A stretch of DNA of 64,000 bases from Blastocystis sp. Blastoise (Eukaryota > Protista > Bigyra: Opalinata), in assembly GCA_039096225.1 (NCBI GenBank), contig JBBPEB010000033.1:186001-250000 (forward strand). The letters are read 5' to 3'. A program made the position numbers and the translations under genes. The notes beneath the pieces were generated by a model. The model was not told where the DNA came from, searched no databases, and worked only from the letters and a program-made list of their open reading frames with translations. Positions 9,791 through 49,505 of this stretch are shown one piece after another. Position 1 is the first letter of the stretch; each line of letters begins with the position of its first letter.

Positions 9791-12700
9791 TTAATTCTTT
9801 CCAAGATGTAAGTTAATAGGGTTGGTTTTAAGGAAATTGGAGGTACTAATAAGAGATAGTATTTCAGGCTGATTGACAAAAGTTTGAATAAAGGTCGTAA
9901 ATAATTCTTGTCTTTCTTTCTCTACATCATGTTCTATATGCTTACCAAATAATGATAATTTCTTTTCAGGGAACTTTATACTCGTAAATGTGTTCTTTGG
10001 AAGCACTTTTTGTAATTCTTGATAATAATGTCTATATATATTATATATATTATATTATATATAGATAAAGAAAATGAGAAAGACAATGTGATTAATATAA
10101 ATAAATAATAAATAAATAATAAATAAATAATAAATAAATAATAAATAAACATAAATATATATATATATATATATATACTGGAATTCTTTGAATCTTCTAT
10201 ATATAGTCCATGTATATGTAGGTTCACCTCCTTTCACTTCTAATACATATTCAGTATAAGAATTTGGAGTCAATTTAAATAAACCGGCATTCTTCTGTTC
10301 ATATCGAGTTTGAATACGAAGTAGAGAAACCGATTTGAGTTCCAAAGTTTCCACATTTGGAAGTGTCATTGGAGTAGCTTCTATAATATATAAATAAACA
10401 TAAATAAATAAACATAAATTGTTAAACATAAATAAATAAATAAAAAATAAAAATAATAATATATAAAAATAATAATAATAATATATAAAAAAATATATAT
10501 ACTATGTGATTTTTGATTCATATAAGTGACAATAGTTGCCGTAAATTGAACAATCTCCATATCTTCCCAAATAGTAATACCTTTAATTAACGCAACTACT
10601 TTATCTGTTATTTGTTCACTCGCCATAACTATAGTATACTGCTCATTATTCACAATTAATCGTAATTCTTCACCATTATTCAGTACACGTATTGCTTGTA
10701 AGGGCAAGCACCATAAAGTATTCGCATCTTTTGTTAATAGTAATATATGATAACGAGTAATTAATAAGAAATGAGAATCATTATCTACAACACAATGATA
10801 TATATATTTCTCACGTTCACGTAAATCTGATTTCTTCTTACTTTGGCTTAAAGCTAATAAATGTTGACCATGAGAATAAAAATAATTAAATTGTTCTATT
10901 TTATCATCTAATCCTATATATCTAGGTAATCGCTTACGATTCATCTTTGTATATAACTTGGTACTATCTCGTATCATATCAAAAGCATCACTAGCACCAT
11001 CAAATGCACCTGCTATAGGCTTTGTAACCACACCTATTAATCCTTTTCCTATTCCTTCTAAAGCACCCACAAACCCATTCTCTTTAGCACCATGTACAGG
11101 ATCCATAACAATTCCCGTGAATCCACTAGTAATACCATGAACAAATCCACGCTTACCACTAGCTCTTTCCGATTTATATTCTTGATTAAACGTAAGAGAA
11201 GTAATAGAATCTCCTATTGCTCCTGTTAATACAGATGCACTATTAAAGAATCCATAAGTAGTATTTTTAAGAAGAGCTTTTGTTCCTTTTGATAATCCTG
11301 CATTGAATGCTTCAGGACCTTTTACCATTCCTTGATATGGCTCATAAAAGAATGCTTTTACTCCTGTACCTATATTCTCAAATAAACCTACTGGATTCCC
11401 AAGTATATTAACACCACCAATAAACTTATAAGCATTTTTAATACCTTCATATGTATAATGATTAATAACTTGATTTACTAATGTATCTTGATACATAAAT
11501 ATATCTTCAGTAATAAATGATTTAAAAGGAATAGTAACGTGATCAATATTACCAAGAACAGTTTGAAGTGTAGAGAATAATGTTTCTATAGGTAAGAAGA
11601 AACCATTACTAGAAAGAACTTTAGAAGTAAGACTATATGCAGGATCAATATGATTGGATATAGAAACACTAAATGGATGTATTTGGAATAACTCTGCAAA
11701 TAACCGATGAGAAGACGTACCAATAGCTGGAATCTCAATATAACTAATTAGTATTATAATTATTATAATTATAATTATTATGATTAGAATATATATAAAT
11801 ATAAATAATAATATATATGTATTAAAATCTTGACTATTCTTTAAAGTCAGTACACCCTGTTCATCTGTAGTCTTTAATAAATCCAATTTTAAGGACATAA
11901 TAAAATCAATTAATTCTAATAAGAAATGACTATCTAAAGATATAGCTAACTCCTATATATATAATATATATAATATTATTAATAATAAATAATAATATTA
12001 TAAATATAATAAACAATATAAACTAAATAAACTTAATAATATATACATGTAAAGCAATGCCTAGATATTCTATATAGATAATATTAGGTTGTGAATATAA
12101 TATAGTAGAGAAATGAAGGAATTGATTTGTTGTTTGGTTTTCACATCCAAATAAAACAGGGTTTGTTGTTAATTGTAATTCATCATCTATTTGTACATTC
12201 TTAATCTTGGCTTCAATAGCTTGTTTATTACTTTGATATGCTAAATAATTGAAATTAACATCTGAAACATGTAAATACATCAATTCTTTTGGATCTTTAT
12301 CAATTAAACTTAATCCAAATCCTTCAAAATGAATAGATACTTTAGTATCTAATGATTCTTCTTTGATATTCTCATTATTCCAAAATGTATCTATTATAAT
12401 ACTTCCTTGATTATATATACTTGATATTTCTCCTGTCCAATTCTCATATCGATTTATATTAATATTCTTTTGGAATAAAATAGGATTATTATTTACAGAT
12501 AATTCATTATTCACAAGAGAAGAAGAAGAAGAAGATCGATCTGTTTCTATATCTGTTTCTATTAGAGATATAGAGAAGGACTGAGAATCTAAAGTAGCAC
12601 CTGCAGGGAAACATAACTGTTGTTCCCAATAAGCTTCATAATACATATTCGTTGTATCTATATATATATATAATAGGTTATATATAGATTACAGAATATA

Positions 12701-46922: not shown

Positions 46923-49505
46923 ATGGGTATAACTAAAAAAAGTATTTTTTTAGCAACTATATATATTGTAATGTTCATAGGTAAAATGGAAGATGTTTTC
47001 AATACTGAAGATATGAAACTCATTCCTAATGTTGTCACTTCTATGCAAAATATGTATAACAATAAAATTAAGCCAATTGAGCAACTTTACTTATATGATC
47101 GTTTTTATGCTCCTTTAATGGAAACTCGTGAGTTTAGTGCTAAACCTATGGTTCTTCTGATTGGTCAATATTCTGTTGGTAAAACATCTTTCATTCGTTA
47201 TTGTTTAGAACGTGATTTCCCTGGTCAGAGAATTGGTCCTGAACCTACTACTGATAAATTCACTGCTTTAATGTATGGTAATGACGAACGAGTTATTCCT
47301 GGTAATGCTGCTGCTGTGTCTCGTATATATTTATTGCTTTTAATCTATTTTATTTATATCTGGATATCTATGAATTTATAATTATTCTTTTTTATTAATT
47401 ATAATAGTATGCATTCATTATGTTTTTCTATATTTATAGAGGATTTTGCATTTACTACTCTTCAGGAATTTGGTAGTGGTTTCTTAAATAGATTTGAAGT
47501 CGTTGAAGTACCTGCTAACGTTTTAGAAAATGTCACTTTTGTCGATTCTCCTGGTATTTTATCTGGTGAAAAACAACGTATTAACAGAAGTTATAACTTT
47601 TCTGAAATTATTACTTGGTTTGCTAATAAATGTGATCGTATTTTATTATTATTTGATGCTCATAAACTTGATATTTCTGATGAAATGAAAGAAGCTATTG
47701 AAGCTTTAAGGGTATGTTTATTATTATGTTTATTATGTTTAATATTATGTTTATTATGTTTAATATTATGTTTATTATGTTTAATATTATGTTTAATATT
47801 ATGTTTATTATTATGTTTATTATGTTTTTATTATAATAGGGTAATGATGATAAGATTCGTGTTGTTTTAAATAAGGCTGATTCTGTCGATAAGCAACAAC
47901 TTATGAGAATTTATGCATTTATCAATAATATTATATATATTGATATTCTTATTTCTTTCTATTATATATATATATATATATATATAGTTATGGTGCTCTT
48001 ATGTGGTCTCTTGGCCGTGTTGTTTCTTCTCCTGAAGTCCTTCGTGTCTATATAGGTTCTTTCTGGGATCAACCTATTCGTTATGAATACTTCAAAGATC
48101 TATTTATTATGGAACAAACAGATCTATTCGCGGATCTTCGTGCTCTTCCCGCCAATTCTGTCGTCAGAAAGGTATATTAGTATTCATATTAATATTATTA
48201 TTATAATATAAAATTTTATTGGAATCATTCTTTTCTTATTATTTGTTATTATTATTATTATGATTTCAATATTTCAATAATGAATTTATATCTTTATATA
48301 TATATATATCTTTTTTTTTTAGATTAATGATTTAGTGCGTAGAACTCGTTTAACTAAATGTCACGCCCTTATATTATCCTACTTAAAGGGACAAATGCCT
48401 AAAGTCTTTGGTAAAGTATATTTTTATTTTTATTTTTATTTATTTATTATATTTATTATTATTATTATTATTATTATTATTATTATTATTATTATTATTA
48501 TTATTATTATTATTATTATTATTATTTTTATTTTTATTTATTTATTATTATTATTATTATTATTATTATTATTATTATTATTATTATTATTATTATTATT
48601 ATTATTATTATTATTATTATTATTATTATTATTATTATTATATATATAGCAAAAGAAGCAACAAGAATTAATTGATAATATGCCTGCTATCTTCCAACAA
48701 TTACAGGCTGAATATCGTCTTCCTGCTAGTGATTTCCCTGAAATAGAAGGATTTAAAAAGTTATTAGAAAATATGGATTTCACTACATTCCCTAAATATG
48801 AAAAGGATATGTTTGATCAATTAGATATTGTCTTATCTAAAGATATACCAGCGTATATTATATATATATATATGTTTATTTATTATTTTTTTTGATATAT
48901 ATATATATATATTTATATATAGTTTAATGAATATGTTACCTAAACCTGAAAAACAAGATGCTAATGCTGAACAAGCCAAAGAAGCTGGATATATATTATT
49001 ATCTTATTATTATTATATATATTATTATTCTATTATGATAACAATAATAACTATTATTATGATTTCTATAGGGTGAGAATCCTTTTGCTGCTCCTGAACT
49101 TGTTAGTAATGCAGGTAATTGGAGAATTACTCAAGCTCATAAAGCTGAATGTGATAATATATTCTCAGGATTAAAAACTATTAATGGAAAAGTATATATA
49201 TATATATATATATATTTATGATTCTCCAAATAGAATTAATAGAATTATCTTCTAACTTTGTATTTCTATTATAATAAGTATCTGGTGCTGCTTGTAAGGA
49301 TATTATGATGAAGAGTGATTTACCCACTGATGATCTTCGTAAAATATGGGAATTAGCTGATGTTGACCAAGATGGTAAATTTGATGCTGGTGAATTTGCT
49401 GTTGCTATGTATTTAATTAATGATAGAATGGCAGGTAATAAATTACCAGATACATTACCTGAAGATCTTGTTCCTCCTTCCAAGAGATCTAAACATGTTC
49501 TTTAA
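46923..49505 (+). CDS. EHD1: EH-domain-containing dynamin-like ATPase (EHD/RME-1), 9 introns of which 3 need non-canonical termini
   Basis: KPMVLLIGQYSVGKTSFI, RIGPEPTTD, DSPGILSGEKQR, FDAHKLDISDE, LMRIYGALMWSLG, RVYIGSFW, NPF, and the EH domain IWELADVDQDGKFDAGEFAVAMYL. Confidence 0.93.

Follow-up and report, generated by a model that had tools for sequence, protein, structure and literature searches.

Non-GT/AG intron termini in intact genes of a Blastocystis sp. Blastoise genome assembly, and their possible removal by the major spliceosome

Introduction

Among the described systems closest to the one studied here is human Blastocystis ST1, in which 98.3% of introns are GT-AG, 0.5% are GC-AG and approximately 1% are U12-type, introns measure around 30 nucleotides (nt), both the major and the minor spliceosome are present, and a GA-AG class comprises 59 introns (0.16%) (Gentekaki et al., 2017, PMC5608401). 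In this work we analyzed a 64-kb stretch of DNA from Blastocystis sp. Blastoise (assembly GCA_039096225.1, contig JBBPEB010000033.1, positions 186,001 to 250,000 of the forward strand; hereafter the window), a sequence of 21-29% GC with many introns, focusing on three introns of a gene for an EH-domain dynamin-like ATPase (EHD), and on candidate introns of other genes, whose termini depart from GT-AG. Both systems belong to the same genus and ST1 likewise has a small recognised non-canonical class; unlike those of ST1, the introns studied here are 40-480 nt long, and their odd ends are diverse (TT, GG and CT at the 5' side; AA and AT at the 3' side) and apparently more frequent.

Departures from GT-AG have also been described in more distant organisms. 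In the tunicates Fritillaria and Oikopleura, up to 95% of introns are non-canonical, together with changes in U2AF and in the N6-methyladenosine (m6A) of small nuclear RNAs (snRNAs) (PMC13326754). In the essential genes of these animals, introns departing from the GT/AG rule are excised by the major spliceosome, a feature which may be shared by our case, whereas here only a few percent of introns would be affected and the U1 and U6 sequences are canonical. In Amoebophrya, the affected introns exceed 60%, and many carry inverted repeats of 8-20 nt that form a hairpin; introner elements are present as well (PMC7789003). The introns described below resemble these in having no preferred terminal dinucleotide and in displaying short direct repeats across exon/intron boundaries; they differ in that no end-to-end pairing was found and in that two of them are canonical introns of ancient origin in which a single base differs. 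In animals, fungi and plants, non-canonical introns total 1.2-2.1%, GC-AG being the commonest type, followed by AT-AC and GA-AG (PMC7072748, as summarised in PMC7789003). The handling of rare GT-AG departures by the major spliceosome would be common to that background and to our case; conversely, TT-AG, GG-AG and GT-AA are not among the types named in that summary. The yeast 5' splice site GUAUGU also offers a likeness, as the GUAU(A/G)U of the organism studied here hardly varies from +3 to +6; in yeast, changes at +1 and +2 are not known to be tolerated, whereas here they appear to persist.

The genome searched (G000) comprises 33,340,088 bases in 34 contigs. For the tortoise isolate Rus-B, a genome of 33.3 Mb in 33 scaffolds with 23.1% GC has been reported, assembled with Flye from R9 Nanopore reads called with Guppy 5, and polished four times with racon, three times with Polypolish, and with POLCA, using MiSeq reads (Lind et al., 2025, PMC12129017). 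The same report describes longer introns for tortoise isolates, as well as an annotation pipeline based on STAR, StringTie, BRAKER3 and Mikado that retained only introns with RNA-seq support, each junction requiring 3 reads or more; a term search of its text returned no mention of non-canonical splice sites. Protein searches also led to contigs from three further Blastocystis lineages, namely L006 (45% GC), L007 (32% GC) and L008/L009 (48% GC).

Results

Three EHD introns without a canonical junction register

Residues 1-531 and the stop codon of the deposited Blastocystis sp. Blastoise protein KAK8790871.1 (P0277; 531 aa) match exons of the window exactly, and the EHD gene is single copy, with only one match in the genome (coordinates of all features are collected in Table 1). 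By this exact mapping, 7 of the 10 introns were assigned a GT-AG register. For introns 4, 8 and 9, every junction register reproducing the protein was listed, and none of these was GT-AG, GC-AG or AT-AC: intron 4 can be read only as TT-AG, TA-GT, AT-TT, TG-TA, GC-AT or CA-TG; intron 8 only as TG-TA, GG-AG, GA-GG, AT-GG or TA-GT; and intron 9 only as AA-AT, AG-TA, GT-AA, TA-AG, AT-GT, TA-TA or AT-AT. With the junction solver described below, the top canonical alternative for intron 8 scored 23 bits below GG-AG. A previous sequence-only reading of the window had listed five non-GT/AG introns, these three plus one in a helicase gene (GT-AC, 37323-37101) and one in a VPS13 gene (AT-AG, 11818-11744). 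All five are found in the sequence at those positions and with those terminal bases; as non-GT/AG introns, the three EHD sites hold, being placed by the deposited protein, whereas the other two have ordinary alternatives.

The three segments are not represented in KAK8790871.1 and have to be removed to restore the frame, and read-through is excluded because of their lengths (77, 85 and 86 nt, respectively), none of which is divisible by 3. Nearby canonical pairs either break the frame or remove conserved elements, the NPF motif and the start of the EH domain among them; at intron 9, for instance, an AG lies 1 base downstream and would shift the frame if used. The remaining splice positions fit the consensus of the lineage (TTATGC, GGATAT and ...TATAATAA against GTAT(A/G)T and TATAG), so that each odd EHD site is the consensus minus one position. 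Further, the junctions of introns 4 and 9 lie within direct repeats of 5 nt (TTATG) and 6 nt (AAGTAT), and the GGAT start of intron 8 is also present in intron 2 of both RPL32 paralogs.

Table 1. Positions of the genes, introns and candidate introns under study (window coordinates, unless a contig is named).
Feature	Position	Strand	Description	Basis
EHD (EH-domain dynamin-like ATPase) gene	46923..49505	+	11 exons, 10 introns	Exact mapping of KAK8790871.1
EHD intron 4	47911..47987	+	TT-AG; phase 2, splitting the Ile codon of LMR-I-YGAL	Mapping of KAK8790871.1
EHD intron 8	48987..49071	+	GG-AG (GGATAT...CTATAG); phase 0, between AKEA and GENPF	Mapping of KAK8790871.1
EHD intron 9	49192..49277	+	GT-AA; phase 0, between INGK and VSGA	Mapping of KAK8790871.1
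RPL32 paralog	L036:1299-1877 = G000 C23:517.6-518.2 kb	+		Genome search
RPL32 paralog	L037:1380-1960 = G000 C8:684.5-685.1 kb	-		Genome search
CCT (eta-like) odd junction	L045, G000 C34:195421-195548	-	Within an 8-nt direct repeat (GCTAAGTT)	HMM positions
Intron of DDX42/Prp5-like DEAD-box helicase gene	37101..37323	-	Consensus GT donor at 37323; candidate acceptors 37128, 37101 and 37098	Sequence and frames
Segment of VPS13 C-terminal region	11744..11818	-	75 nt; AT-AG intron or retained insert	ORF and codon likelihood

At the position of EHD intron 4, a GT-AG intron is found exactly in place in L006, L007 and L008 (exon AT, intron GT...AG, exon T), and a 33-nt GT-AG intron occupies exactly the position of intron 9 in L007; intron 8 has no counterpart in L006 or L007. 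Since GT-AG introns stand at the same positions in relatives, two of the three odd EHD introns are old ordinary introns with one terminal base different. The 1.6-kb EHD coding sequence is free of frameshifts, and the encoded protein is approximately 93% identical to that of L008/L009. A sequencing run that probably represents RNA contains a fraction of 0.51 of the 31-mers of the gene, approximately the exonic share. Gene predictors that work ab initio, AUGUSTUS for example, are not known to place introns with TT, GG or AA ends, and the gene model of KAK8790871.1 is therefore most likely transcript-derived. Homology searches and exact look-ups of the open reading frames (ORFs) of the window in protein collections returned the deposited protein only, with no transcript-derived fragment from this organism and no independent DNA contig, and a metagenome scan with the same protein matched human-gut Blastocystis only, at 63-70% identity.

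Two side observations concern this gene and its relatives. The canonical EHD intron at 48416-48649 consists nearly entirely of (ATT)n over approximately 230 nt, and similar pure (ATT)n introns occur in two other loci (L030 and L041). In turn, L008 and L009 correspond to the ENA metagenome contigs ERZ8810624 and ERZ27292454, with 48% GC and introns of 33-50 nt, compared with the 23%-GC genome studied here; given the high EHD identity in spite of these GC contents, the shift in base composition is therefore recent relative to the divergence of the proteins.

RPL32 paralogs sharing unusual intron ends

Two RPL32 copies are present in the genome, with 13 synonymous and 0 non-synonymous codon differences between them and with introns that have diverged both in sequence and in length (114 vs 80 nt, and 54 vs 84 nt). 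In both copies, removal of intron 1 joins ...KRMN to QHWRKPKG, and neither has a usable AG ahead of the conserved WRKPKG motif: intron 1 of L037 runs GT...AAT and is AG-free throughout, and that of L036 starts with CTAAGT and ends with GAAT, its sole AG being located at the 5' end. Intron 2 of L036, between ...NAK and AHIRKVENESE, contains neither GT nor GC, and in both copies GG-AG (GGAT...) is the only register between K and A with a canonical acceptor, a type also represented by EHD intron 8.

These paralogs bear on the principal alternative, according to which residual R9 Nanopore consensus errors (substitutions or 1-nt indels at the junctions) disguise canonical GT-AG introns, whose spliced RNA would still align. 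This alternative is favored by the assembly and polishing route described above, by the clustering of three sites in one gene, by the single-base distance of every EHD site from consensus, and by the identity of the odd base with a neighbouring or matching one, which a miscall at a homopolymer boundary would also produce (e.g., AG followed by G read as A followed by G at 49277/8). Against it, polishing worked nearby, as neither the EHD coding sequence nor approximately 13 kb of VPS13 ORFs display any frameshift; for chance to affect 3 of some 40 splice-site bases, the gene would have to contain hundreds of errors; the GG-AG site is not rescued by a single indel; and the same odd bases stand at both introns of the RPL32 paralogs in spite of the divergence of these introns. 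Because two functional paralogs share the odd ends, random consensus error is hard to accept, which agrees with the previous judgement that assembly error explains these sites poorly, and we consider this alternative unlikely.

Frequency of non-canonical junctions beyond the window

A less biased sample was obtained with the Cpn60/TCP1 hidden Markov model (HMM), which yielded 57 exon matches in 9 CCT genes and 48 junctions, 5 of them with missing exons, leaving 43 evaluable. A clear GT-AG solution was found for 42 of these, the non-canonical share being 1/43 or 2.3% (confidence interval 0.06-12%), which does not clearly reach the figure of about 5% put forward by the sequence-only reading. At the odd junction, in L045, all HMM positions are kept by non-canonical registers only (CT-AG, GT-AA, TT-AG and others), and the sole canonical option, GC...AG, loses two HMM match positions (residues AK). 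For EHD, the two RPL32 paralogs and a CCT subunit, all of them intact genes of this assembly that are single copy or essential, the occurrence of non-GT/AG termini is accordingly supported.

At a rate of 2%, about 5 genes per genome would be expected to carry three non-canonical introns, and the EHD cluster is therefore compatible with the picking of an extreme case. At 0.2%, the rate assumed to be typical of other eukaryotes, approximately 0.004 genes per genome would be expected with three such introns in one 10-intron gene, and the cluster is not expected.

A junction solver combining codon likelihood with position weight matrices finds the EHD sites yet yields false positives, and no rate was based on it. 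Its non-canonical calls were rejected in L030 (a missed exon), L032 (a weak AAAAG acceptor) and L035 (gene boundaries), as were two calls in the window, a CT-AG at 22768 that is really a GTAAGT donor at 22732, and one at 7586 that is an (ATT)n artefact. At 25508-25676 of the window (minus strand), no more than a poor GT-AG was proposed by the solver, in line with a U12-type AT-AC intron of VPS13 suggested for that place.

Splice-site consensus and spliceosomal RNAs

In 37 HMM-anchored CCT introns, the 5' site displays A at +3 in 37, T at +4 in 36, A or G at +5 in 35 and T at +6 in 31, and the 3' site has T at -5 in 33, A at -4 in 32 and T at -3 in 36. The resulting consensus, GTAT(A/G)T...TATAG, is conserved at 84-100% per position, confirming the general pattern first traced by eye in the window. 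Both candidates with C at +1, intron 1 of RPL32 in L036 and the L045 junction if read as CT-AG, have the donor CTAAGT, which fits U1 better than the usual GTATAT, A at +4 being found in just 1 of the 37 normal introns.

Two copies of U1 were identified (86 bits), their 5' end being the canonical AUACUUACCU; U6 scored 94 bits and contains a canonical ACAGAGA box and AGC. Compensatory changes, for which inspection of the snRNAs had been proposed, were absent from U1 and U6. For U12 snRNA, one weak match was found in the genome. A U12-type identity was rejected, as by eye none of the five donors (TTATGCAT, GGATATAT, GTATATAT, GTATATAT and ATATATAT) has the RTATCCTT motif, in agreement with the sequence-only reading. 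A stwintron identity was likewise discarded, no inner GT-AG unit abutting the terminal base being seen by eye in the three EHD segments.

Direct repeats at the junctions

When repeat length is defined as the distance, in bases, over which a junction can slide with the mRNA left unchanged, six independent non-canonical introns have repeats of 5, 2, 6, 8, 3 and 2 nt, compared with 0-4 nt (mean 1.07) in 67 GT-AG introns (Mann-Whitney p=3.6e-4), and repeats of at least 5 nt occur in 3/6 vs 0/67 (p=3.2e-4), in a non-canonical sample that is small and partly chosen from leads. In every non-canonical intron the odd base is identical to its counterpart in the corresponding position on the other side of the intron, and the odd donors GGAT... 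and CTAAGT... are recurrent (window 47911-49277, L036, L037 and L045). This pattern might reflect a requirement for tolerance, a mutational process or a particular type of error.

One explanation built on these repeats is a separate class of non-conventional introns, similar to those of dinoflagellates and Amoebophrya, with ends set by short direct repeats straddling the junctions rather than by GT/AG. The repeat lengths are in its favor, and Amoebophrya non-canonical introns do carry boundary direct repeats of 3-5 nt (PMC7789003). Nevertheless, EHD introns 4 and 9 are old, lie at conserved positions and are one base off consensus, and the sample carries the limits given above. Further, pairing between the first and last 24 nt shows no excess within introns (mean duplex energy of -5.6 kcal/mol for ends of the same intron vs -5.5 kcal/mol across introns, p=0.47), and is weaker for the ends of the non-canonical introns (mean -4.2 kcal/mol); a hairpin model with paired intron ends was rejected on these grounds. 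We regard a separate class as quite improbable. In a narrower form, a minority class set by junction-spanning repeats of 5-8 nt, sometimes with CUAAGU donors that suit U1 better, would exist in essential genes beside a normal spliceosome; this is also rather doubtful, and such a repeat-defined class would, if true, be the stramenopile counterpart of the boundary-repeat introns of dinoflagellates and Amoebophrya.

Helicase and VPS13 sites with ordinary alternatives

Three acceptors are in frame with the helicase donor. The first is a canonical AG at 37129-37128 (aataatAG), 27 nt upstream of the AC, which adds 9 residues encoded by AT-rich codons; the others are the AC at 37101 and an AA at 37098. 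The acceptor alternatives received close scores from the junction solver (14.1 and 11.1).

The VPS13 segment has about 6% GC and no in-frame stop, the ORF 10381-11898 reading through it, and its removal restores no frame, as its 75 nt are open in frame. The segment falls outside the codon-likelihood cores, which are divided at 11821 and 11748. By composition and by this split it appears intron-like, and it may instead be a retained in-frame hydrophobic insert of 25 residues. A PDB search with VPS13 gave nothing useful.

Both sites keep alive the possibility that the genes were mis-modelled, with nearby canonical sites used or no splicing taking place and with slightly different proteins as a result, and the false calls of the junction solver (missed exons, weak acceptors and gene boundaries) point in the same direction. 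It applies to two of the five sites (the in-frame AG at 37128 and the open VPS13 segment), and is contradicted at the three EHD introns, where canonical pairs break the frame or delete the NPF motif or the EH-domain start, and at RPL32 intron 1, with no usable AG ahead of WRKPKG. We consider mis-modelling very unlikely as the general explanation.

Other observations

In L035:980-2080 (minus strand), short, closely packed intronless ORFs with their own ATG and TAA were found, unlike their intron-rich neighbours. Three intronless HSP70 genes with equal HMM scores are located in the genome at C25:695280-697094, C16:1451521-1453335 and C16:1552281-1554095. An intron-bearing gene of the HSP70 family is duplicated 366 kb apart (C33:707908-709629 and C33:1074416-1076137), and these duplicates could act as internal controls for splice-site bases.

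Discussion

We favor, with restrained confidence, the explanation that these are real introns, one terminal base off GT/AG, and that this tortoise-gut Blastocystis excises them with its ordinary major (U2-type) spliceosome. A spliceosome with such tolerance is suggested by the deposited annotation together with the comparative sequence data, and it would imply that the reference bases are correct, that the RNA is joined exactly at these points, and that the major spliceosome is responsible. The normal introns of this genome carry an unusually information-rich signal, with GUAU(A/G)U at the 5' side and UAUAG at the 3' side; pairing of U1 and U6 at +3 to +6, plus the UAUAG context, could plausibly suffice for a site in which one terminal base is wrong, and a few percent of such off-consensus sites may persist, essential genes included. 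The related proposal of the sequence-only reading, that recognition relies on the flanking ATAT/TATA context, fits the EHD introns, which keep the consensus, and is not general, as the ends of RPL32 intron 1 do not.

Several observations weigh against removal by a tolerant major spliceosome. The genomic bases and the junctions are known through the assembly and the deposited annotation; the assembly derives from R9 Nanopore reads polished with MiSeq, and spliced reads do not contain the intron ends, so that a real TT would look the same as an error in the reference or an allele missing from the assembly. Three of ten introns are clustered in one gene, and the five cases initially listed involve five different changes, a pattern closer to noise than to a code. 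No further robust case was found in the rest of the window or in 200 kb of other sequence. In addition, tolerance by a U2-type spliceosome does not predict the association with direct repeats, and the ends of RPL32 intron 1 deviate from the flanking consensus of the lineage.

The question is directly testable, as public RNA-seq (BioProject PRJNA1041441) and DNA reads exist. If the finding is true, gene predictors restricted to GT/GC-AG would break several percent of the genes in these genomes, and this may be one cause of the low BUSCO scores published for tortoise isolates. If both the bases and the junctions hold, a culturable gut protist with textbook U1 and U6 would tolerate changes at +1, +2 and -1 in genes such as RPL32, and would constitute a natural system in which to study what, besides the terminal dinucleotides, fixes the cleavage points of an intron.

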